Shown here: piece after piece, positions 20,750-56,910 of the stretch
How positions within the stretch are numbered: the first letter of the stretch is position 1
Layout: the number at the start of each line of letters is the position of its first letter
Sequence record: MH791404.1
DNA: 64,000 nt
Direction: 5' to 3' (one strand)
Translations under genes and position numbers: made by a program
The notes under the pieces: generated by a model
What the model was told of the DNA's origin: nothing
What the model saw: only the letters and a program-made list of their open reading frames with translations
Database searches by the model: none

Positions 20750-22246
20750 TTAAGATATTTGGATCCTAGTTGAGCGAGTGGTTACTTGACCATAACTGTT
20801 CTTATAAATGGCGTAGTAGAAAATTGATGTGTCTAGAGTTGGGGTAACTTCTATCTCTAGATTTTTAGAATTACCTACTTCAACACCCCTTGAGGTTTTC
20901 CATTGAACTGTGGAAAATCTATCACAATCCGATTCTATCACGACCGTATCACCAACTTGCGCGTTATATATAACTTGCGGTTGTTTCGTTATTTTAGGCG
21001 CAACCGTACTCCACCAAATTGTATCACCGACGATATCAAGAACCAGTTTTCCATCAGTAGATACCAATTTTCCATTACCCTGATTTGAAATATTAAATAG
21101 ATGACTGTTTCCATCCATGTAAATTTCAAATTGTTCAATGGTGATGTTATTACTATTTAACCCGAATACAGTATTGAGCCCTGTATCAAGACTAAGATAT
21201 GGATCTGTTATTCTTGCGTAGACTTCACCGTTTACATACAACCTTATATTTTGAGCAAATCCGTTAGATACATCAAACCAAACAGATACACCAATACTGT
21301 TATTTCTTGGTAATGGTCTTTTCAATGGTTTGGTGTGATAAACACCATCAGGAGTTTTAACCCAGAATGTGTTAGTTTCTAGATTTATGCCCATACCAGT
21401 AGAAATACCACCAACGTTTTTTGAAGCTATCACTAGTTCTGTAGCGATATCACCAATAACAAGGCCACCAGAAACTTTATGTGTCTTGTTCGCAACCATC
21501 AAAGAACCAGTGGTAGAGAATCCAGCGTCTCTATTTAAAATAATTGCTTCGTTGGTTAAAACGTGGGGGGTTGGTTGATAATCGATCAGGATATTTGTAT
21601 TTGTAACCATAGGTGAATCAAAAGAGAAATCACCATTTGTGTTATATCTAACTCCAACACCAAAGTTAAATTGTATTAGACAGTCTTTCTTTGCGGTGAA
21701 AGTAGAGTATATACGGGTTCTCTCATCACCAATTAATGGATTATTATCAAATTTAGTTTTAAATGTTAGATAATTATCAATGGGGTCACCATTGTCCATG
21801 TATATATCAGCAAGTACACCACTATGAACCAACGTAAGATCGTTGTTTTTAACCATAACGCTTGCGGTATAAGTTTTTCCAGCCTTTAACGAAATACGGG
21901 TTTGGAAGAACATTCGACTATCAATAGTTCTGAATGTATATCCTTTCGTATTTTCATTATCTTGGTTGAAGCTTATAGCAAAAGCGTTATTTCCCGTATT
22001 TGTCGAGTTATTATAAACGGTATAGCATGGTGGAACGTTTCCAATAACAACCCCGTCAGAATAACAAAAAATATCAGTACCATTCAACATTCGACTATTT
22101 GCTAATAGGTTTTCGTCGCCAAGGTCATAAGCTCTATGCCATGCCCCATTAGAAAAAACCCACGGTACGGACCTATGCCAGTTATTTTTATAAATGGATG
22201 GGATGGTGTCATGCACCACCCCATTTTTATACACTTTGTTAGCCAT
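20750..22246 (-). CDS. Putative virion adhesin (lectin/CBM-like beta domains plus C-terminal Ig-like domain)
   Basis: 498 aa directly downstream of wac; beta-rich; C-terminal APKITKQPQ...GDTVVIES...VQWK Ig-like pattern. Confidence 0.55.
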   Translation of the reverse strand: MANKVYKNGVVHDTIPSIYKNNWHRSVPWVFSNGAWHRAYDLGDENLLANSRMLNGTDIFCYSDGVVIGNVPPCYTVYNNSTNTGNNAFAISFNQDNENTKGYTFRTIDSRMFFQTRISLKAGKTYTASVMVKNNDLTLVHSGVLADIYMDNGDPIDNYLTFKTKFDNNPLIGDERTRIYSTFTAKKDCLIQFNFGVGVRYNTNGDFSFDSPMVTNTNILIDYQPTPHVLTNEAIILNRDAGFSTTGSLMVANKTHKVSGGLVIGDIATELVIASKNVGGISTGMGINLETNTFWVKTPDGVYHTKPLKRPLPRNNSIGVSVWFDVSNGFAQNIRLYVNGEVYARITDPYLSLDTGLNTVFGLNSNNITIEQFEIYMDGNSHLFNISNQGNGKLVSTDGKLVLDIVGDTIWWSTVAPKITKQPQVIYNAQVGDTVVIESDCDRFSTVQWKTSRGVEVGNSKNLEIEVTPTLDTSIFYYAIYKNSYGQVTTRSTRIQIS

Positions 22247-22257
22247 CGTAAACCCTT

Positions 22258-25200
22258 TTAGTTGATGAATTCGAAGAACACATCACCTTCTTTAGGACTG
22301 GTCGGTGCGTCTGTAGCAAAATCACCGTAGTAATACGCTCTTGTCCACTGACCATCTTGTCTTACGTACTTGTTTCCGTCTGCTGGTGCTTCGAAACTAT
22401 CCTTTGTGAGGACTTTATCGTTATTGATTGTTACCTCAGATGTGGTAATACGAACCGGTAGATCGGTGTCACCAATTGCGATAAACTTTTCTGTAGAAGG
22501 TTGCGATATACTAATTATGTTCTTATCGACATTATTTACCTGTGTGGTAATACCGAAACTATTATTGGCACCTACTTCTGCAAGCTTGAGGTTAGTTACC
22601 TTACCGTCAAACTTCATGAACGTTCTACTATCACCAATAACCATTAGCTTATCGACACCAACTGTATCCACCTTGGCTACGTTATATCCACCAATGATGA
22701 AATCGCTGGTTTCACCAACAGAAACATCCTTGGTTGGGTCTATACCGTCATGGATTAGAGTCCATTGCCCACCCTTACGAGCGTAGAAATTCGCGTTGTT
22801 TGGTGCGTCATGTGCGTCGGTCCAAACTTTCTTAGCATCAGAACCAACACCAACAAACAGATTCCCAGTAGAATATACATTCACTGGTGTGGTTGTGTCG
22901 CCGATCACTATTTTGGTTTGGGTACTTTCTAAAAGAGAACCATAAGATGTAGAAATTTTACTTTCTAATTTGAAATCGGATACAGTACCACGAAGGTTTA
23001 TTTTCCCTGTAGTTCCACCAATTCGAGTTGTTACGGTTGCAGAATCAACGGTAAATGCAGTAATCGTACCACTATTGGTTTTTGCCATTATAGATACGTT
23101 TTCTGCTAGGGTTATATTTCTTTCGCCTACGGCTTGCCAGAAACCAACACCATCGTCATTTACCCGAGCGTATGCCAATCCGGACTGTGGTGCATCACCA
23201 ATAATACCAGTACCAGAACCACCCTGTTCAACGACCATCCATTGGTTGTTCTTACGAGCGTAAAAACTACCATCTGCGGGTGCATCCATACCTTGGTGCC
23301 AAACCTTAAACCGATCAACCCCAGTACCTTGAATATAAAGGTCCGTTGCAAATACGTTAGTAGTTTCAATATCACCGTATGTCAATATTCCACCAAAGTT
23401 ATTGACCACGTTTAGATGTTTACCCATACCAACATTCATCTTAAACGCTTTGTCTTGGTCCATAATCAATTCGCTGACATTTCCCTTAAATGCGAGGTTT
23501 GTATTAGCAGAACCAATATTTATTGTAGTGTTATCTAATTTAATAACATCTGCGCCTGCATAACCAATTACCGCATTCTGGTTTAGGGTAAATCCATTCT
23601 CTGGGTTAACGTCGGTGATATATTTTTTGTAGTTCCCAATATGCAGAACATCAAATTCACCGGTTGGTGTGTTATACTTGAAAGAATCGATATCCTTACC
23701 AACCATAACTATATTCTTATCACTCTGACCAACTTTTATAGTTTGATCGGTAGAGCCAAGAATAGTTTTCCCATATTTTCTGATATCAGAGGTTGTATCA
23801 AGAGAAATATTTCCGATAATGTCGCCGACTATACGGAGTTTGGTTGTTCCGTTATGACCAAAGGTCGGGATATATTTCCCATCAGAACCAGTAGAATAAG
23901 AAACAAGTGTGGTTCCGTCGATGGCGGTAATCTTATTGTTATCACCAACCACAAAGTTAGTGGTAAACAAATCTCGCCATACCCAGTTAGCACCATCATA
24001 TTCTCGCGACCATACGGCACCAAGCCGAGTTTCTGTTGGGTTAGGGATATATCCAGCACCATTCTTATAATCACGGTACATCTGTTCATACATATCTTTC
24101 GATGCTTGATATGAACCAATTCTACGGTAATCGTCGTCAGCGACGTTTTTTGTCCCTTCTACCTTGATAACCAAACCTGTGTTTGGATTACCTACGGTAT
24201 TTTGTAGATCCTCAATAGAAGTTCTATATTCGACGTTAACAGTAGTTGATATACTCGAAACACGACCATCAAGATCTTCGAAATGTTCTTTCTCTCTCTG
24301 GTCTACTTCTTTAACTTTTCCCTGCAATCCATCTAGAGGACTAGATCCTAGAATACCTTCGTTATTCTCCATACGGACACGTAGATCATTAATTCTACCC
24401 CAAGCGGTGGTATCCAGTGTGGAATCACTAGCCGAACCAAGAGAACGAGCCAAGTCATCAGACAGACCCTCGGTTTGTTTGGCGATACCACTAATATAAT
24501 CTACGTCTTTCTTGACATGTAAAGAATAATCGTATAGATTACCTACGGTTTGATAAGAATCGGTTTGTACATCAAGATACTGGAGAGGGAATTCACCGTA
24601 TCCAGTGTGTTCTACAAGTTCTTGAACCAAAGGTGAATTTGTTTCGTCGGCCATTTCTAAATCGCCGATACGAGAATAAATGTTCCTTGTTGGATCAGGG
24701 TCTTGTCCAAGTTCGGTTCTAATCTGGTTAACTTCTTCCCTCAAAGATGCAGGAGTTGAGTCTTCCCACCATTTTTCAAGAGAAGTAACACGAACATCAA
24801 GGTTGACACCAGTGTTATAGTTACGTTCGATCTGACCTTTCACCCCCGAAGAAAGTGAGCCGGGTGATGGAACACCATCAATATCAAAATCTTTATAATT
24901 ACCCAACATTTTTTTGATATGAAGGTCATCTGCTCGGAGAGTTCGGAATCTAAGAGATGGATCCCCAACTCCGATATTATCTGAAATTGACTGGATTTTT
25001 GCGTCGAGGATTACATCGGTTTCTTTGATTTCTTCAAGGATTCCGCTATGGACATCCATTTCGGTTTCCAAATCACCAACTCGTTGATATAAATCTCGCC
25101 CATCACCAGCATTAATTATATCATCATGAATATTCACCTTGTCGATAACTTCCGACATCTTAGAAAGGATTGTTTCTTGGTTTTTATCCAATATCTCTAC

Positions 25201-25383
25201 GTTAGCAGAAATTTGAGTAGAGGGACGGTTTAAAACGCCCCCTTTATCACCAACAATAGTAGGATCCGCCCCTTGTGGCTGCTCACCATTTTTAATCCAT
25301 TCAACCTGCTTTTGACCAGAACCAGCAACAGGCATATCAGAAGTATATTTCAGGTCATCCAATACAGGTTTAATAATTTCCAT
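22258..25383 (-). CDS. wac: Fibritin (Wac), extended, with multiple foldon-like motifs
   Basis: N-terminus VLDDLKY..EWIKNGE..GAD..GVLNRPSTQISANVEILDKN matches T4 Wac; coiled coil; five foldon-like motifs. Confidence 0.9.
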   Translation of the reverse strand: MEIIKPVLDDLKYTSDMPVAGSGQKQVEWIKNGEQPQGADPTIVGDKGGVLNRPSTQISANVEILDKNQETILSKMSEVIDKVNIHDDIINAGDGRDLYQRVGDLETEMDVHSGILEEIKETDVILDAKIQSISDNIGVGDPSLRFRTLRADDLHIKKMLGNYKDFDIDGVPSPGSLSSGVKGQIERNYNTGVNLDVRVTSLEKWWEDSTPASLREEVNQIRTELGQDPDPTRNIYSRIGDLEMADETNSPLVQELVEHTGYGEFPLQYLDVQTDSYQTVGNLYDYSLHVKKDVDYISGIAKQTEGLSDDLARSLGSASDSTLDTTAWGRINDLRVRMENNEGILGSSPLDGLQGKVKEVDQREKEHFEDLDGRVSSISTTVNVEYRTSIEDLQNTVGNPNTGLVIKVEGTKNVADDDYRRIGSYQASKDMYEQMYRDYKNGAGYIPNPTETRLGAVWSREYDGANWVWRDLFTTNFVVGDNNKITAIDGTTLVSYSTGSDGKYIPTFGHNGTTKLRIVGDIIGNISLDTTSDIRKYGKTILGSTDQTIKVGQSDKNIVMVGKDIDSFKYNTPTGEFDVLHIGNYKKYITDVNPENGFTLNQNAVIGYAGADVIKLDNTTINIGSANTNLAFKGNVSELIMDQDKAFKMNVGMGKHLNVVNNFGGILTYGDIETTNVFATDLYIQGTGVDRFKVWHQGMDAPADGSFYARKNNQWMVVEQGGSGTGIIGDAPQSGLAYARVNDDGVGFWQAVGERNITLAENVSIMAKTNSGTITAFTVDSATVTTRIGGTTGKINLRGTVSDFKLESKISTSYGSLLESTQTKIVIGDTTTPVNVYSTGNLFVGVGSDAKKVWTDAHDAPNNANFYARKGGQWTLIHDGIDPTKDVSVGETSDFIIGGYNVAKVDTVGVDKLMVIGDSRTFMKFDGKVTNLKLAEVGANNSFGITTQVNNVDKNIISISQPSTEKFIAIGDTDLPVRITTSEVTINNDKVLTKDSFEAPADGNKYVRQDGQWTRAYYYGDFATDAPTSPKEGDVFFEFIN

Positions 25384-25417: not shown

Positions 25418-26770
25418 TTAGGTTGTTTGGTATATGTCATTAACACCCCAAACATGCCATATAATACAGTTGTCACCCGTGGTATGGAAATAAGTACCAT
25501 TAGCGTTAAACCTACCAATCCACCAAGTAGAATCGGTGTCTGCAATCCACCAAGCGTTAGCGAAATTATCTTGAAGGATAGAAATTTGAGCCTTCGATAT
25601 ATAGTTAGACTTCATATGTCTACCATCATCACCAGAGGATACAACTATTAACCCATCGTAATTCCACCACGGTTGTGACATATTAAAGTCACCACTTTTA
25701 TGACCACCATATGGAGCAGCATTAAAAATCAATTGTCTATCAGTTCTATTAAGAGTTACTGCACTTCCACGATTAACCTTTCCATTTATTTGGTTTTGTT
25801 TATCCTCGAATGCTCCAACTGCCCAATCATATCTAACAACCGCATTAGGTGAACCATCTTGGGGATTTGTAAGATATATATTTGGGGTAATCAATGCACC
25901 GGTCATTGTTCCCCCAGTTTTTGCAACTAAGGTTGTTGCTCCATGAGAACTTAACGCTTTATTCGTTGCCCCTTGCACAGCAACGTCTGTCAATGCAACA
26001 ATACCCCACTGGGAAGACGATGCAATTGGAAGAGTTGCTGGGCTAATGGCTACGTCAGTTGCAGTACGGGCATTAGACTCGGCTTGAGTTGCCATTTTTA
26101 CTGTACCAACTCTTGATTGAGTTGCACGAGTCTCAATAAAGCCTTTCGGGCTAACTGCTACACCGTTATGTAAAGCCGCATTAATTACTGGGGATGGGGA
26201 AATCTTAACTATCCCAGAGGTCAATTCAGTTGCACCGGAATTTGCAGTAACTGCGAACTTATCTATCATTGCCTTAACAACATCAGGACTTGTTGCAGTA
26301 GTTGAATCAGTCCCTTGTTGTCCAATGGTAATCGTCGATAATTTCAACGTACCGGCTTTTGTGGTAGAACCAATTGCTTTTGTTCTGATGATATCCCATA
26401 TACCAGCCGTATTAATGCCTATAGATGCGCTTGCTGCTGTTTCTAGACGTTCCGCGCTGGTAGCGTACCTAACTAGACCCTTAACCGTTTCTGATGCATC
26501 TGGGCGCACCCATTTGGCTTGTAGGGTCTTGGGAGTAACGATTGCATCAGCCACGGTTCCTGCCAATACTTCCGCTTCCGTCGCAATCCTGAGAATACCC
26601 ATTTTTGTTTCGGTCGCTTTCATATCCTCATACCTTCCAATTGCATGGGGTTGTATGAGTTCAGCCATTTTTTGTACATCATTAGTTGTTGCTGGGAAAT
26701 TAGTGGTGCTAGGGTCTAGCACCACATCAACAGCTTTAGAACTAATATGTTGTTCTGTATTATTAATCAT
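25418..26770 (-). CDS. 12: Short tail fibre gp12
   Basis: MINNTEQHIS..DPSTTNFP..DVQ; repeated ASET.KG.(L/V)R.AT..E motifs. Confidence 0.9.
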   Translation of the reverse strand: MINNTEQHISSKAVDVVLDPSTTNFPATTNDVQKMAELIQPHAIGRYEDMKATETKMGILRIATEAEVLAGTVADAIVTPKTLQAKWVRPDASETVKGLVRYATSAERLETAASASIGINTAGIWDIIRTKAIGSTTKAGTLKLSTITIGQQGTDSTTATSPDVVKAMIDKFAVTANSGATELTSGIVKISPSPVINAALHNGVAVSPKGFIETRATQSRVGTVKMATQAESNARTATDVAISPATLPIASSSQWGIVALTDVAVQGATNKALSSHGATTLVAKTGGTMTGALITPNIYLTNPQDGSPNAVVRYDWAVGAFEDKQNQINGKVNRGSAVTLNRTDRQLIFNAAPYGGHKSGDFNMSQPWWNYDGLIVVSSGDDGRHMKSNYISKAQISILQDNFANAWWIADTDSTWWIGRFNANGTYFHTTGDNCIIWHVWGVNDIYQTT

Positions 26771-26772
26771 TT

Positions 26773-27744
26773 TTAACCAATCCTTTTCCAGTAATAAAGT
26801 GTTGTTACCGTGGTATCAATTGCAACTTTATCTTCTTTGAAAAACATTTCCCAATATCCGTAACCATAAGATGCAGGAGATCCAACAACCCAATCGATGG
26901 TCATCCCATATTCTGACCATGGTTCTGGTGTGTGATCACGAAGGTCTCTATATGTGAAGTTTATAGAATCACTAGAAAGTTTAGTAACATCCCTCACATA
27001 TAAACCATCCACTTCAAATTGTTTAAGTAAATCGAATACTTTATCTCTAACAAATGTCGGACTTACACCATCTGCAACTTCAATTCGAGTACCAAATACA
27101 TCAAGAACAACAGGCATACCAGAAATTGGAGAGGAAATAGCACCAGAAAAGGTTAATGTATCGATTTGTGGTTTTCCGCCGGGGTCCGTATTATCTATAT
27201 TTATAATAACAGAACCTTTATTAAGTCTTCCCACATATGCAGCATCGGAAATTGCGTTTTCAACTGTCTTGAACTTGTTATGACTTCTGGCATCTTGGAT
27301 TGTTAGGTTACCGATACCACCAACAACAGATAACGTCTCTAATGTCGGGTCTCCATTAAATTCGTGGTCTGATGCTTTTCTACTCTTGATCATAGAAGCC
27401 ATTCGACTTCTAGTCATATCTGTGTTTGTTCTACCGTCAAACATAGTCACGGTTACAACAGACGAATCCAAAGAACTTAGTTCCGCGCCTGATGTGGAAT
27501 TGACTTCTTTAACACGACATCTGAAATAACCATGATTATATGATGCGTTTGATGGAAGAACTCTTAGATTATCAGTTGCCGCACTAGCATCAACAACGGC
27601 AGTCCAAGCATTGCTATCTACGGAAGATTCCCAAGAATATCTAAGTTCTGCATCTACGTTGTTTGTACTTGCTAAAATAGAAAGCTGGTATGAACTACCA
27701 GCATAATATGTTAGGCTTCTTGGTTGTTGAAAAATACTTATCAT
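26773..27744 (-). CDS. 11: Baseplate wedge gp11 with N-terminal Ig-like extension
   Basis: C-terminal about 220 aa (PQIDTLTFSG, DVFGTRI, YGMTI, GYGYW, YYWKRI) matches gp11; start at the TAATG overlap with gene 10. Confidence 0.85.
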   Translation of the reverse strand: MISIFQQPRSLTYYAGSSYQLSILASTNNVDAELRYSWESSVDSNAWTAVVDASAATDNLRVLPSNASYNHGYFRCRVKEVNSTSGAELSSLDSSVVTVTMFDGRTNTDMTRSRMASMIKSRKASDHEFNGDPTLETLSVVGGIGNLTIQDARSHNKFKTVENAISDAAYVGRLNKGSVIINIDNTDPGGKPQIDTLTFSGAISSPISGMPVVLDVFGTRIEVADGVSPTFVRDKVFDLLKQFEVDGLYVRDVTKLSSDSINFTYRDLRDHTPEPWSEYGMTIDWVVGSPASYGYGYWEMFFKEDKVAIDTTVTTLYYWKRIG

Positions 27745-29882
27745 TATTCTACCCTTAGCCATCTATGGGCGGTGGTTGTAGGTTGGATCACAGAGAACGG
27801 GTTTACTGTTTCGTTTGGTCTGGTATAGACATAATCCTCTCTGTATTTCTTATAACCCGGACCACTCTCGTCTGGGTCGTATTGACACCCACCAACAAGA
27901 ACATCACCATTCGGATCTGCAATAAGCGCCTTTTCCGTACTTTTTGTTCCGGGGGTATTGTCAACCGCAAGGGTTACGTCGTTTTCACCAAAAATACTAC
28001 CAGCACTGTGTCTTGGTTGTCCGTTAATATCCAAATCTTGGTTATTCAGACCGTATATCGGATCGTTTGGATTCTGACTATTCCACCCAGCAACAACCTT
28101 ACCCTCTGCCCAACGAACCCAAGTACCAATCCCCATATAGGTTGCTGGGTTGTTCGGGTTATGTGCGTTTTCGTAGATAGTACCAACTGGATAAAACATA
28201 TCAAACAGCATTGCAATAGAGTTTGCAGGAACGTTGATCAAATCGTTAGGATCTGGTTGTACTGTCTTTGGGGTTGGATTGAAAGGATCAGAATATCTAA
28301 TTTTCCCGGTCAAAGTAACAGGAACAGTATTGATATACTTTTTGTCTGTCTCTTTGATAATATCGTCAAGTTCAAGCAACGAACCAATATCATTATTAAA
28401 CCAACGAATCGTAATAACGTCTTCATGGTTGAACGGTTCGTTCACCACAATATCACGCATATAACCGTTCTCATCTTCGATAGGTCCAAAATCAACACCA
28501 GTAGGAACCCAAACACCACCATTAGCAATACAAGATTCTTGAGTTAAGCTATCCGCACCCTCACAAGTAAAAAACGGTATATCACCCTGTCCAGATTTAA
28601 CCAATTGACGACCGTTGACAATCATCTCTAGAGTTTTTGGGTTAAAAGTCTCACTTGGTTGGAAGCCAAATTCGGAAAGGTTAAATCTAAATTTAGCAGA
28701 CAGATCCCCAACAAACCGACGCCCTGTTTCAGAAACATAATCTACAGGAACATATTGGTCGGAATAAACCCGAATAGTCGCAGTTTCGTAAGAACTTCTA
28801 TATGTAGCCAAACCGTCTAAGAAAGTTTCGATAACAACAACATCACCAGCTTCGCACGGCTTTTCTAGCTTAATGGTATAACCATCAAGGTCTGTTATTT
28901 TGCTAACACCAACATAATATGAAAATTTTGACGCGATTTTCATTTGAGCTAGAATGTCAGGGGTTTCATTCACAGAAACATATTCGCTGGTCAGCTTATC
29001 GAATTTCATTAGGTATGTTTTATCGTTATAAACACAAACCAAACGGTCTTCGTTAAGTGGTTTCTTATTAAGGTCAAATTTTATGTATGTCTTTTTATCA
29101 GACTCTTTGGAATAAAAGGATACTATAGTATTCCCTTCAACTGTTCCAAATCTAGTTCCCTTACCAACAATAGTACCCCACCTATCGCTATCGATTTGTA
29201 CCGGGTTAATATCAATCTTGGCTGGGTCTGCAACAGTCTTTTGAACAATAGACCCATAGTTTGATTCGGGACCGTATTCCTGACCGTAATAAAGAATGTT
29301 ACCGCGCTTATATACGTTAATCGAGTTTCTGTTATAACCAGACGAGAATATATTTTGAAAATCGGTTTGACCTTCGGTGGCAATAAATTCTTTTTTGGCA
29401 ACAGTTGCTATGTCGTTGGATCTAATTTCACCAACATATTTACTTGGTACATAATCCCAGTTACCGGGAGAGCAATATACAAGCTCAACGTCCATGAAAT
29501 TGTTTTCTAATCTGTGTGTACCAGAAGACCCTTTGATGGTATTAAATCCACCGGGAACAAGAATTACTGGGTTTCCACCCCAAGTTCCCATTACATCACG
29601 AACACGAATAACCTTACCATAATCGGCTGGTGTTCCACTCGGAAGATTGACAGTAATACGACCGGTTGTTGTATTAATTACCCACGCCTGACCCATAATA
29701 GCCGATAGAGTTTTTGTGTGGTCGCTATATGGTTTCCATGCACCAGCAGCATGAGGAATGTTACCATCCCCCAAGTTGTAGTAAAGTTCATTAAAGTTGT
29801 CGTTTGTCTTCTGACCACCTTTTCTAAGGTAATCACCGGTTCCGTCATCAACACGATTACCAATAATAATTTGCTGTTTCAT
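27744..29882 (-). CDS. 10: Baseplate wedge gp10
   Basis: MKQQIIIGNRVDDGTGDYLRKGGQKTN, AGAW, FDMFYPVGTIYENAHNPNNPATYMG, HRWLRVE. Confidence 0.96.
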   Translation of the reverse strand: MKQQIIIGNRVDDGTGDYLRKGGQKTNDNFNELYYNLGDGNIPHAAGAWKPYSDHTKTLSAIMGQAWVINTTTGRITVNLPSGTPADYGKVIRVRDVMGTWGGNPVILVPGGFNTIKGSSGTHRLENNFMDVELVYCSPGNWDYVPSKYVGEIRSNDIATVAKKEFIATEGQTDFQNIFSSGYNRNSINVYKRGNILYYGQEYGPESNYGSIVQKTVADPAKIDINPVQIDSDRWGTIVGKGTRFGTVEGNTIVSFYSKESDKKTYIKFDLNKKPLNEDRLVCVYNDKTYLMKFDKLTSEYVSVNETPDILAQMKIASKFSYYVGVSKITDLDGYTIKLEKPCEAGDVVVIETFLDGLATYRSSYETATIRVYSDQYVPVDYVSETGRRFVGDLSAKFRFNLSEFGFQPSETFNPKTLEMIVNGRQLVKSGQGDIPFFTCEGADSLTQESCIANGGVWVPTGVDFGPIEDENGYMRDIVVNEPFNHEDVITIRWFNNDIGSLLELDDIIKETDKKYINTVPVTLTGKIRYSDPFNPTPKTVQPDPNDLINVPANSIAMLFDMFYPVGTIYENAHNPNNPATYMGIGTWVRWAEGKVVAGWNSQNPNDPIYGLNNQDLDINGQPRHSAGSIFGENDVTLAVDNTPGTKSTEKALIADPNGDVLVGGCQYDPDESGPGYKKYREDYVYTRPNETVNPFSVIQPTTTAHRWLRVE

Positions 29883-54146: not shown

Positions 54147-54239
54147 GCGTGAGTGGCGAAGTTGGTTGAAACGCATCGGACTTAAAATCCGATACTGCAT
54201 AATGGCACATCGTGGGTTCGATTCCCACCTCACGCACCA
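54147..54239 (+). tRNA. tRNA-Leu(TAA)
   Basis: GCGTGAG acceptor stem, TCGGA-CT-TAA-AA-TCCGA, long variable arm, GTTCGA, encoded CCA. Confidence 0.92.
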
Positions 54240-54294
54240 AATACGAGATGATAAACCCAAATTCCTTTTTGTTGAATGAGCTTTTGAACGTAAA

Positions 54295-54480
54295 ATGAGT
54301 TTATCATCTCCAAAATTCAAAATTCAATATGAGATGCTTAATATGAACGTATACATCAGAAATTACATGCGCGATGTCCTTTGGAGTAGTATCTTCAATG
54401 AAGATCACTGTAAAGGTAAATGTGTTAAGATTATGCGTGGTAAACATTTGAAGCCTTTCTATCAAAAATCGAGATATTAA
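54295..54480 (+). CDS. Possible small hypothetical protein
   Basis: 61-aa ORF ending 1 nt before the next start; start uncertain. Confidence 0.35.
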   Translation: MSLSSPKFKIQYEMLNMNVYIRNYMRDVLWSSIFNEDHCKGKCVKIMRGKHLKPFYQKSRY

Positions 54481-54481
54481 A

Positions 54482-54871
54482 ATGAAAGTGAAGCTTGGTG
54501 CCTATAACCTTAATGAAAAAAGTTCATTGGTTAATACGAATGGTGTAAAATTCATTTTGAATGAACAAGTTATAGATGAGTTTTCTAAAAAACTACCTAT
54601 TCTAATCAATTTTGGTCAAAAATGTTTTAACATCGATAATGTCAGAGATACACCAGATCCGGTTGGTATTCTAAATTCCATAGAAACTTACAAGAAAGAT
54701 AATATCATTATTGTTACTGGTGATATAGAAATAACCAATGACAAAGTGTATGATGTTCATGGATGCCTTCCTTCTTTTTGTGTTCGGTCTCTGGCTAATG
54801 GTGACGGTGATACTTATAAAGTTATCGAGATCGTTGCGTGGGATATGGAAATATATGAAGGTTTATCATGA
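54482..54871 (+). CDS. Hypothetical protein
   Basis: 129 aa; ATGA-coupled to the next ORF. Confidence 0.7.
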   Translation: MKVKLGAYNLNEKSSLVNTNGVKFILNEQVIDEFSKKLPILINFGQKCFNIDNVRDTPDPVGILNSIETYKKDNIIIVTGDIEITNDKVYDVHGCLPSFCVRSLANGDGDTYKVIEIVAWDMEIYEGLS

Positions 54872-55266
54872 ATAAACATGATATTCATCTCATTGGTATT
54901 AGTAAGTTTATCAAGAAAGGTCTTACTGTGGTTCAATCAAGTTTGGTCTTCAAACAAACCAGCGAAGAATGGAAAAATATCCATGGTGTTGATGTAGACA
55001 AAATTTATTGCTATATTAACAATGATGGTAAGGATATCTATGCAATTGGTAGACTTAGATCCTGTTGTGGACCTTGGTTGAGTGTTAGTTGTCGGTCTCT
55101 CCATAAAAAAGGTTATATAGCATTTGACTTTAACGATGAAATTGAGATACCATATGGTTCGGGGATGAAAACTGCTTATAGGGTATTGTTTTCTGACACC
55201 CCTAAATACGAGTATGATGAAGAAGCCAGACATCCAGTCGCTTACTTCGAAAAATACTTCAAATAA
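54868..55266 (+). CDS. Hypothetical protein
   Basis: 132-aa ORF. Confidence 0.7.
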   Translation: MNKHDIHLIGISKFIKKGLTVVQSSLVFKQTSEEWKNIHGVDVDKIYCYINNDGKDIYAIGRLRSCCGPWLSVSCRSLHKKGYIAFDFNDEIEIPYGSGMKTAYRVLFSDTPKYEYDEEARHPVAYFEKYFK

Positions 55267-55310
55267 AAGTTAAACATCCTTTCTAACTATGATATGATGT
55301 TTATATAAAT
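55261..55310 (+). promoter_or_regulatory. 50-bp promoter cassette upstream of tRNA-Arg, copy 2
   Basis: Duplicate of 54095-54144. Confidence 0.75.
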
Positions 55311-55311
55311 T

Positions 55312-55388
55312 GCGCTGTTAGCTCAGTTGGATAGAGCAACGTTCTTCTAAAGCGTGGGTCACTGGTTCGAATCCAGTACGGCGCACCA
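55312..55388 (+). tRNA. tRNA-Arg(TCT)
   Basis: ACGTT-CT-TCT-AA-AGCGT anticodon arm; GGTTCGAATCC; CCA. Confidence 0.95.
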
Positions 55389-55472
55389 CGGGATGTGGTG
55401 AAATTGGCAGACACACTAGATTTAGGTTCTAGCGCCATAGGCGTGACGGTTCGAGTCCGTCCATCCCGACCA
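55389..55472 (+). tRNA. tRNA-Leu(TAG)
   Basis: CTAGA-TT-TAG-GT-TCTAG; variable arm; CCA; abuts tRNA-Arg. Confidence 0.95.
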
Positions 55473-55473
55473 A

Positions 55474-55549
55474 GCGGGTAAGGTGTTTATGGATACATGC
55501 AAGCCTTCCAAGTTTGAGTAGACCGGATCGTTACCGGCTACCCGCTCCA
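55474..55549 (+). tRNA. tRNA-Gly(TCC)
   Basis: GCGGGTA acceptor stem; CAAGC-CT-TCC-AA-GTTTG; atypical T loop (GATCGTT); CCA. Confidence 0.85.
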
Positions 55550-55560
55550 AGATTTAAAAT

Positions 55561-55630
55561 TGATGTGTTACAGCTATCAGCTCACCGTTGAAAGAATACG
55601 GATAAGTCGGCTCGACTAAAGAACATATCA
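55561..55630 (+). ncRNA. Cloverleaf-like structured spacer (tRNA-like ncRNA or degenerate tRNA)
   Basis: TGATGTGTT/AACATATCA closing stem around three short hairpins; no canonical T loop or CCA. Confidence 0.4.
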
Positions 55631-55633
55631 TTT

Positions 55634-55710
55634 GGCCCCTTAGCTCAGTTGGTTAGAGCAACCGACTCATAATCGGTTGGTCACTGGTTCGAGTCCAGTA
55701 GGGGCCACCA
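55634..55710 (+). tRNA. tRNA with CAT anticodon, Ile2 (lysidine)-type
   Basis: GGCCCCTTAGCTCAG...ACTCATAATC...AGGGGCCACCA closely follows E. coli tRNA-Ile2 (ileX) as recalled. Confidence 0.85.
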
Positions 55711-56074
55711 AATANNNNNNNNNNNNNNNNNNNNNNNNNNNNNNNNNNNNNNNNNNNNNNNNNNNNNNNNNNNNNNNNNNNNNNNNNNNNNNNNNNNNNN
55801 NNNNNNNNNNNNNNNNNNNNNNNNNNNNNNNNNGATATTATATCGAATTCCATATCTAAACTATCTGTTATTTATTGGTCCGATACACCTCCTTGGATAA
55901 AAGAAAATAAGATATCATGGTGTGTTGATAAAGAACGGTTGATAGATTATAATAATAAGAGCTGTTAAGAGTCCCATCGCTTCTAAAAATATCAAAAGGG
56001 ATGTTGATGCGCGTATGTAGCCGGGTTATAATGACCAAGATTCATGAAGGGTGAAAGACCACCCTAAATATCAT

Positions 56075-56152
56075 AGCGGGGTGGAGAAGTCAGGAGTTCT
56101 CGCCAGACTCATTATCTGGAAATCGGTGGTTCAAATCCACCTCCCGCTTCCA
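56075..56152 (+). tRNA. tRNA-Met(CAT), initiator-like body
   Basis: AGCGGGGTGGAG, CCAGA-CT-CAT-TA-TCTGG, GGTTCAAATCC, CCA; CTAAATA at 56064-56070. Confidence 0.88.
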
Positions 56153-56153
56153 A

Positions 56154-56229
56154 TGGCGTGTAGTTCAGTAGGTAGAACAGCGGACTGTTAATCCGTATGT
56201 CGTGGGTTCGAATCCCACCTCGCCAGCCA
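56154..56229 (+). tRNA. tRNA-Asn(GTT)
   Basis: GCGGA-CT-GTT-AA-TCCGT; GGTTCGAATCC; GCCA. Confidence 0.95.
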
Positions 56230-56235
56230 AATTCT

Positions 56236-56326
56236 GGATGTTCGGCTACGATGGCGGTGTAGCGGCGGACTGTAAATCCGTTCCCTCTGGGTAAACAAGT
56301 TGGTTCGAATCCAACAGCATCCACCA
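56236..56326 (+). tRNA. tRNA-Tyr(GTA)
   Basis: GCGGA-CT-GTA-AA-TCCGT; long variable arm; CCA. Confidence 0.92.
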
Positions 56327-56480
56327 AATAGAAGAAGTTAGAAGACGTTCTGATAAAATCCTCGGAGACGATGCCCCCTTGCGGTTTTAAACCGTTACGG
56401 ATAAGCACGGGGTAATCCAAATCAACCATTATAGGGATGTGGTCATCTGGTATGTAAAATACAGTTGGTTTGGAACTTTT

Positions 56481-56556
56481 CGGTGATTAGCGCAGTTGGT
56501 AGCGCGTCTGGTTTGGGACCAGAGGGTCACAGGTTCGAGTCCTGTATCACCGACCA
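56481..56556 (+). tRNA. tRNA-Pro(TGG)
   Basis: CGGTGAT acceptor stem; TCTGG-TT-TGG-GA-CCAGA; CCA. Confidence 0.95.
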
Positions 56557-56834
56557 CTTAGCACAAAGAACGGGTAACGACGTATGCCCCGGAATAAGCC
56601 AGCCATAGAGAATCTGGATATCCTGAAACGTGCCTTTAGGTTTCAGGCGGGATTGGTAGTATAAAGACGATATGGTAACTACTCCTTGACAAGCAGGGTT
56701 GAACTTGAGGTAACTGTCCTTTACCAAACAACGAACAGATGGACAAAATCAGTTGAACGTCCTTCCTCCTTGTGATAGCATGTCAACTACATTAGGATAT
56801 AATCACAGTCTAACGATCCTGATTATAATCCGCT

Positions 56835-56910
56835 GCCGAATTAGCTCATCTGGTAGAGCACAGCCTTTGTAACGCTGGGGTGGTCCGTTCGAGTCGGACA
56901 TTCGGCACCA
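56835..56910 (+). tRNA. tRNA-Thr(TGT)
   Basis: GCCGAAT acceptor stem; CAGCC-TT-TGT-AA-CGCTG; GTTCGAGT; CCA. Confidence 0.92.

Follow-up and report, generated by a model that had tools for sequence, protein, structure and literature searches.

The wac gene of Aeromonas phage Assk, which we examined within a 64,000-nucleotide stretch of record MH791404.1 (the window), encodes a neck-whisker fibritin in which a T4-like half is followed by a long distal half. We found in this distal half four short predicted hairpins of about 20 residues, F2 to F5, that by their sequence profiles are genuine foldon-type elements, related to the foldon of phage T4. F2, F4 and F5 each close a beta module, the three modules (M2, M3 and M4) being by profile comparison diverged repeats of one another, and F3 is an extra tandem copy that follows F2. 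The gene itself is already annotated and, judged by homology, is a member of the published AehI-type fibritins. What our analysis adds is an architecture, in which four foldon-type hairpins close repeated modules and are accompanied by one probably decayed copy and a conserved tail, and a second point, that the foldon-type repeat appears to be widespread in phage fibres.

Foldon-type hairpins in the distal half of the Assk fibritin

A single open reading frame (ORF) of 1041 amino acids (aa) and a stop codon holds the whole feature. It is the ORF that Assk carries as its "fibritin neck whiskers protein" (22258..25383, minus strand), with 100% identity over the gene; the family phrog_9687 covers it over its full length (E=0), and phrog_1056 matches as well. 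The gene and its motifs lie as follows, in coordinates of the window.

22258..25383, minus strand: wac (fibritin, neck whisker), an AehI-type long fibritin by its 100% identity to Assk, phrog_9687 and collinearity with Aeh1 Wac
23977..24054, minus strand: F1, aa 444-469, at the position of the original fibritin C-terminus, where the Pfam Fibritin_C match ends
23230..23286, minus strand: F2, foldon-type hairpin, aa 700-718 (40.2 bits on the motif profile)
23197..23229, minus strand: glycine-rich linker between F2 and F3, aa 719-729, recognised from its sequence (G724 and G726 invariant)
23128..23196, minus strand: F3, foldon-type hairpin with a turn 4 residues longer, aa 730-752 (30.6 bits on the motif profile; insertion in the motif alignment)
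22753..22809, minus strand: F4, foldon-type hairpin, aa 859-877 (40.7 bits on the motif profile)
22336..22392, minus strand: F5, foldon-type hairpin and the closest copy to the T4 foldon, aa 998-1016 (40.2 bits on the motif profile)

The motif pattern has four matches in Wac, where chance predicts none, and no other in the six frames of the window, and even one match arose in just 3 of 20,000 shuffles. The motif profile was built from 17 natural copies of F2-F5, taken from Assk, 65, Aeh1, S13 and VmeM-32 only. It detects exactly four copies in Assk, at 30-41 bits each and in places that are common to 65, Aeh1 and phiAS5; in the alignment from which it was made, the proline, arginine and tryptophan are present in 17/17 copies and the tyrosine in at least 90%. 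F2-F5 are among the best-conserved segments of Wac, for they retain 34-58% identity to the most distant relatives whereas the modules between them retain 11-29%. Columns that are invariant across eight long fibritins are likewise enriched in the motifs (15/106 against 20/492, p=3e-4). Six such columns lie in F2 (D700, P702, D704, Y708, R710 and W715), and others are W749 in F3, A860 and W874 in F4, and P1000, D1002, Y1006, R1008 and W1013 in F5.

Compared with the PDB, the motif profile matched the 27-residue T4 foldon peptide (1rfo) with E=2.1e-7. It retrieved 567 chains at E<=1, and of the 60 matches listed nearly all are foldon peptides or foldon-tagged constructs; a natural protein, the baseplate chain 8rk3_a of phage JBD30, was matched too (E=2e-6). 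The match spans foldon residues 3-22, leaving the last five residues of the foldon unmatched, and within it the conserved acidic residue, proline, tyrosine, arginine and tryptophan of the motif align to foldon positions 5, 7, 13, 15 and 20. F5 can be aligned directly to the foldon of the T4 fibritin chains 2bsg and 1rfo, while F2 and F3 together align to the engineered tandem-foldon chain 8wro (E=1e-3). Motif-to-foldon scores are weak when single sequences are used (E from 1e-3 to 0.5). The initial annotation of this DNA had proposed that the motifs be checked with the Fibritin_C profile, and of the single motifs only F5 registers, on profile positions 72-91 with 13.4 bits (E=0.088), below the cut-off of 21 bits. 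Single motif pieces are too short for the Pfam test, so a reciprocal profile search was used instead. None of the copies is a complete 27-residue foldon unit at the C-terminus, F2-F4 being internal and F5 being followed by 25 residues.

The initial annotation had counted five foldon-like motifs and had given eight short strings, the five motifs with their positions. All eight strings are present, the given coordinates are right to within a few bases, and F2-F5 score as foldon-type elements, but F1 has no detectable foldon similarity. On its own F1 retrieved no foldon with the motif profile, the PDB search or Pfam; as a true foldon in Assk it was ruled out for that reason, and it is kept as a decayed positional homologue. 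It is among the least conserved segments of Wac (8-23% identity to distant relatives) and the model shows it, with low confidence, as a hairpin. F1 probably derives by decay from the foldon of an ancestral fibritin of T4 length, because S13-like fibritins (P0010, P0012 and P0013) carry a canonical copy of the motif aligned at the F1 position. These three fibritins carry a canonical copy at the end of M1 too, where Assk has none, and the comparison suggests that the ancestral plan may have been one hairpin per module.

The hairpin is found well beyond the fibritins. A word-indexed homologue search gave 6 close relatives only, and an exhaustive HMMER search with aa 470-1041 was used instead; this gave about ten long-fibritin representatives and about 50 further proteins that are not fibritins and that were matched mainly at the motifs (chiefly F2-F3), in up to nine separate stretches. 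The non-fibritin fibre proteins have 2-14 profile-detected copies of the motif each, often in tandem with a period of about 23-29 residues. All ten of the fibre proteins examined score on Pfam Fibritin_C, at 53-110 bits, with a best stretch that ends at profile positions 89-92 and is confined to positions 60-92 in 9/10. These ten proteins also bear features of tail fibres, among them matches to PHROG tail-fibre families, T4_gp9_10_N, collagen, the Peptidase_S74 chaperone domain, Phage_tail_C and the YadA stalk. A metagenomic example from a baseplate gene cluster, P0018 (L005:2864-4888), has a T4 gp9/gp10-type N-terminus, after which come about 14 foldon-type hairpins. The tail-fibre representatives P0015-P0066 and JBD30 chain 8rk3_a share the Assk motif by profile; in the tail-fibre representatives the hairpins are often consecutive and are borne on tail or baseplate domains, whereas in Assk they are spaced by beta modules and are borne on a neck whisker.

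By these profile matches, the motif is a widespread repeat of phage tail fibres. We found no paper describing foldon-like repeats in tail fibres, within a literature coverage that was incomplete and had Letarov 2005 outside its scope. For annotation, a Pfam Fibritin_C match in a tail-fibre protein would mark a foldon-type repeat and not a fibritin. The foldon is among the most used trimerisation tags, and it is plausible that F2-F5 would be useful as natural foldon variants for engineering, as had been suggested at the outset; at least about 60 cluster representatives with divergent copies would make up a catalogue of variants, if these trimerise.

The AehI type, its modules and its partner gene

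The remaining parts of Wac are the two segments of its T4-like half, the beta modules and the tail. M2 (aa 585-718), M3 (aa 753-877) and M4 (aa 878-1016) are the modules with their motifs included, and B2-B4 are the same modules without them.

25204..25383, minus strand: N-terminal collar-attachment domain, aa 1-60 (approximate), from homology to the T4 N-terminus and invariant residues
24055..25203, minus strand: segmented alpha-helical coiled-coil shaft, aa 61-443 (approximate), from T4 homology, Pfam and periodicity
23632..23976, minus strand: M1, beta module, aa 470-584, ending in VLHIGN, with no terminal hairpin motif and weak similarity to the other modules
23287..23631, minus strand: B2, beta module, aa 585-699, ending in KVWHQG (hhalign without motifs: B4 E=8e-7, B3 E=1.6e-4)
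22810..23127, minus strand: B3, beta module, aa 753-858, ending in KKVWTD (hhalign to B4 without motifs: E=3.5e-6)
22393..22752, minus strand: B4, beta module, aa 878-997 (hhalign M2-M4 E=9e-14, M3-M4 E=3e-13)
22261..22335, minus strand: conserved C-terminal tail, aa 1017-1041, from its conservation

T4 fibritin (PDB 2bsg, 487 aa) aligns with residues 7-407 of Wac with E=2e-26, and this alignment together with the length of 1041 aa bears out the earlier reading of the gene as a fibritin of twice the T4 length; the figure of about 487 aa that had been given for T4 Wac agrees with PDB chain 2bsg_A. Residues 7-73 match the N-terminus of T4 fibritin (PDB 2ibl and 1ox3) with E of about 2e-11, and W29, N32, G33, E34, N52 and R53 are invariant across the eight long fibritins. 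Pfam Fibritin_C has one match in Wac, at aa 388-474 (35.8 bits, cut-off 21), which reaches profile positions up to 92/93. A hydrophobic periodicity of 3.5 residues runs through aa 61-443 (z=3.9) and is absent from aa 470-1041, a region that is rich in glycine, threonine and asparagine. An all-beta, tail-fibre-like half behind the coiled coil, punctuated by foldon-type motifs, is supported.

The beta modules had been taken for repeats that end in VLHIGN, KVWHQG or KKVWTD, and this is what we found: the three strings lie at aa 579-584, 693-698 and 851-856, respectively, and hhalign profile-profile comparison makes M2, M3 and M4 homologous at a probability of 98-99% (E from 1e-13 to 1e-21), the best pair being M2 and M3 (99.4%, E=3e-21). 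The relation among the three modules persists without the motifs (E from 1e-4 to 1e-6), while M1 is marginally similar to the others (E about 2e-3). The tail that follows F5 is the best-conserved segment of Wac, at 76% identity to Aeh1, 64% to VmeM-32 and 44% to S13 where overall identity is 25-30%, and Y1017, Y1019, P1027, G1033, D1034 and F1037 are invariant in the eight long fibritins; these 25 residues are likely to serve either for contact with a partner or as a nucleus of folding. An AlphaFold2 monomer model of aa 430-1041, made from an alignment without the S13 row and used for secondary structure only, has 35% strand and 3% helix, with a mean predicted local distance difference test score (pLDDT) of 54 and a predicted template-modelling score (pTM) of 0.20. 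In it all five motifs take the form of an arm and a tight hairpin in one register, at a pLDDT of about 50-60. A local superposition on the foldon 2ww6 covers 20 columns at a root-mean-square deviation of 1.5 A and is not significant.

The doubled length is not new, because the AehI type of fibritin has already been published. According to Letarov and Krisch (2013), fibritins of this type are twice as long as T4 gpwac, have at the C-terminus a large fibrous domain that weakly resembles tail fibres, and possibly play a role in host recognition (PMC3797505). Assk Wac has twice the T4 length, C-terminal homology to Aeh1 Wac and a gp218-type gene immediately downstream, all marks of the AehI type. 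It is collinear with Aeh1 Wac (NP_944095) from end to end (30% identity, E=2e-145), is of the same length class (1041 aa, and 1035 aa in Aeh1) and shares with it the four motif positions; in Aeh1 as in Assk, the wac locus lies between gp12 and gp13 with the gp218-type gene downstream of wac. The differences are the identity of about 30%, the genus (Cinqassovirus for Aeh1, Ceceduovirus for Assk) and the number of additional small ORFs that separate the partner gene from gp13, three in Aeh1 and one in Assk. The C-terminal 570 aa align at full length with Wac of Aeh1, phiAS5, PX29 and their relatives (~30% identity, E down to 4e-71), and Wac of Cronobacter phages S13 and LPCS28, Citrobacter phage Ci1 and Vibrio phage vB_VmeM-32 matches over 52-62% of them. 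We found no description of internal foldon-type motifs in an AehI-type fibritin in the accessible literature, a scope that did not include Letarov et al. 2005. In Aeromonas phage Ah1 (MG250483.1 / NC_055733.1) the long wac is annotated as two coding sequences, wac_1 and wac_2, and the gene appears to be split.

Compared with T4 fibritin and its foldon (PDB 2bsg, 1aa0 and 1rfo; Pfam PF07921), Assk Wac has a homologous N-terminal domain and coiled coil, and the profile of F2-F5 resembles residues 3-22 of the T4 foldon. The T4 protein has 487 aa and one foldon, which stands at its C-terminal end, whereas that of Assk has ~600 extra beta residues with four internal copies and one putatively decayed, and no copy at the very C-terminus, where 25 residues come after F5. 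In JS98-type fibritins, as in Assk, there is more than one foldon-type motif per fibritin; the motifs of JS98 are set apart by a short spacer with a coiled-coil pattern, whereas in Assk beta modules of about 100-120 residues separate them.

The gene that follows wac is the candidate partner of the whisker.

20750..22246, minus strand: partner gene, 498 aa, homologue of Aeh1p218 (37% identity to Aeh1ORF207w (= Aeh1p218), E=1e-110)

S13 and VmeM-32 have a homologous or similarly placed gene after their long wac. The 498-aa protein matches no Pfam family. Its model (pLDDT 66.6, pTM 0.49) is mostly above a pLDDT of 70 from residue 120 onward and of low confidence in the first ~100 residues, and it resembles tandem sandwiches of the ConA/LamG/galectin type with a C-terminal immunoglobulin (Ig)-like domain, at overall template-modelling (TM) scores that are low. 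The best matches in the fold search were an arabinoxylanase rich in carbohydrate-binding modules (E=3e-7), laminin LG4-5 pairs, galectin-8, a Bacteroides carbohydrate-binding protein and arrays of Ig domains. The modelled fold looks more like that of a glycan-binding virion partner than that of a classic chaperone. The literature on virion proteomics of these phages yielded nothing usable.

Possible working of the whisker

We think it fairly probable that the whole is best explained as an AehI-type Wac with a T4-like half and an extension of modules and hairpins, in which the motifs act as clamps of trimer register. Each motif would form, in the trimer, a foldon-like layer of three hairpins around the fibre axis and would keep the three chains clamped in register where a module ends. 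The motif would thus be an element of shaft-building and registration rather than an autonomous nucleus of folding: the copies look like shaft or clamp repeats and not like dedicated terminal nucleators because they are internal, because they match foldon residues 3-22 only and because they represent a common repeat of tail fibres. Folding would probably start at the C-terminus, with F5 and the conserved tail, and would depend on the downstream 498-aa protein, as is reported for Aeh1. An ancestral fibritin of T4 length may have been extended by units of module and hairpin, through duplication or through recombination with a motif-bearing fibre gene, and the long distal half could plausibly take part in extra contact with the cell surface, a role that Letarov and Krisch have put forward for Aeh1. 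A fibritin type that was known but structurally undescribed can in this way be read as a T4-like fibritin with added units of beta module and foldon-type hairpin, and the arrangement suggests that fibres may grow by duplication or recombination at a shared motif.

Several points weigh against this explanation. Foldon positions 5, 7, 13, 15 and 20, with which the conserved residues of the motif align, contribute an inter-subunit salt bridge and the hydrophobic core; a literature check gave no confirmation of these roles. Single pieces F1-F4 gave no match to Pfam Fibritin_C, and no single motif passes its threshold. A PDB fold search with the monomer model returned nothing significant; that low-confidence monomer is the sole model, and we infer the trimer geometry. 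The lectin-like fold that is modelled for the 498-aa protein would be unusual for a pure chaperone. Finally, the chaperone dependence of Aeh1 rests partly on unpublished data (PMC3797505) and is carried to Assk by homology only.

A reading that is compatible with the register-clamp explanation, and that we regard as possible though less probable, holds that the distal half is a fibre whose main task is to bind the host surface and that the 498-aa protein is also a lectin-like partner or tip adhesin seated on the conserved tail. An analogue of such a tip adhesin is gp38 of the long tail fibre of T2. The carbohydrate-binding sandwiches of ConA/LamG/galectin type and the Ig-like domain in the model of the 498-aa protein speak for this reading, as do the constant position of the partner gene next to a long wac and the standing of the 25-residue tail as the most conserved part of Wac, and host recognition has been suggested for the AehI fibritin by Letarov and Krisch (PMC3797505). 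However, a place for the 498-aa protein in the virion is a prediction only, its model is moderate (with the scores given above, low TM-scores and no Pfam family), and T4 fibritin has no known receptor role. A broader proposal seems to us about as tentative: the T4 foldon could represent one terminal copy, standing alone, of a repeat of ~20-25 residues that is widespread and builds trimeric shafts of stacked three-hairpin layers, and AehI whiskers could be second host-contacting fibres with a lectin-like partner of the gp218 type on a conserved tip.

We regard it as unlikely that F1-F5 are five independent foldons, each of which trimerises by itself, so that the whisker would be nucleated at several points and would fold autonomously. 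Four of the motifs are significantly foldon-like with key residues aligned, and the two foldon motifs of JS98-type fibritins, set apart by their short spacer, do let those proteins fold unaided (PMC3797505). Against such autonomy stand the observations that AehI fibritin is insoluble, forming inclusion bodies, unless it is co-produced with Aeh1p218, the product of the next downstream gene, and that only the fibritins of T4 and JS98 are reported to fold by small foldon motifs alone (PMC3797505); autonomous folding is thus reported for T4 fibritin and is not so reported for the AehI type. In addition, F1 is poorly conserved and has no detectable foldon similarity, the motifs lack a counterpart of the last five foldon residues, and many fibres use the motif as a simple repeat that often stands in tandem. 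The initial annotation had envisaged a "multiply nucleated" whisker, and that part of it is not supported and is the weaker reading, since self-trimerisation conflicts with the reported insolubility of AehI fibritin without gp218 and the motif seems to be an ordinary repeat of the shaft.

It is similarly improbable that the motifs are intrachain staples, hairpins that complete each beta module and resemble the foldon through a common hairpin design with no shared role in a trimer: the motif does always come after a conserved strand (KVW...) that ends a module, and the monomer model sets each hairpin beside its own module at low confidence, but the aligned residues are those that make contacts between the subunits of the foldon, and F2 and F3 stand back to back with a glycine linker only while other proteins have arrays of as many as 14 copies, which often follow one another almost or entirely without a spacer, an arrangement that is hard to reconcile with a staple of a larger module.

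Neighbouring genes and other features of the window

Assk is assigned to the Straboviridae, subfamily Emmerichvirinae, genus Ceceduovirus, and its genes around wac keep a T4-like order of gp11-like, gp12-like, wac, the 498-aa ORF, a small ORF, gp13 and gp14. The position of wac between gp12 (short tail fibre) and gp13 (neck) is that expected of a T4-like fibritin. Plus-strand ORFs overlap wac (e.g. 23641-24114) and were taken as chance ORFs within a conserved gene.

The gp12-like short tail fibre (25418-26770, minus strand, 450 aa) has repeats in common with proximal long-tail-fibre subunit families (phrog_972, in two stretches). Next to it, the gp11-like baseplate wedge protein (26773-27762, minus strand, 329 aa) has an extra N-terminal stretch of ~115 residues before its gp11 domain (116-328), and this stretch matches a PHROG family of 'virion structural protein'. 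With few exceptions, large ORFs lie on the minus strand between about 5500 and 44000 and on the plus strand beyond, and coding strand and GC skew both flip sign at about 44000. A cluster of ten tRNA genes lies on the plus strand at 54147-56910, with two for Leu, two for Met and one each for Arg, Gly, Asn, Tyr, Pro and Thr.

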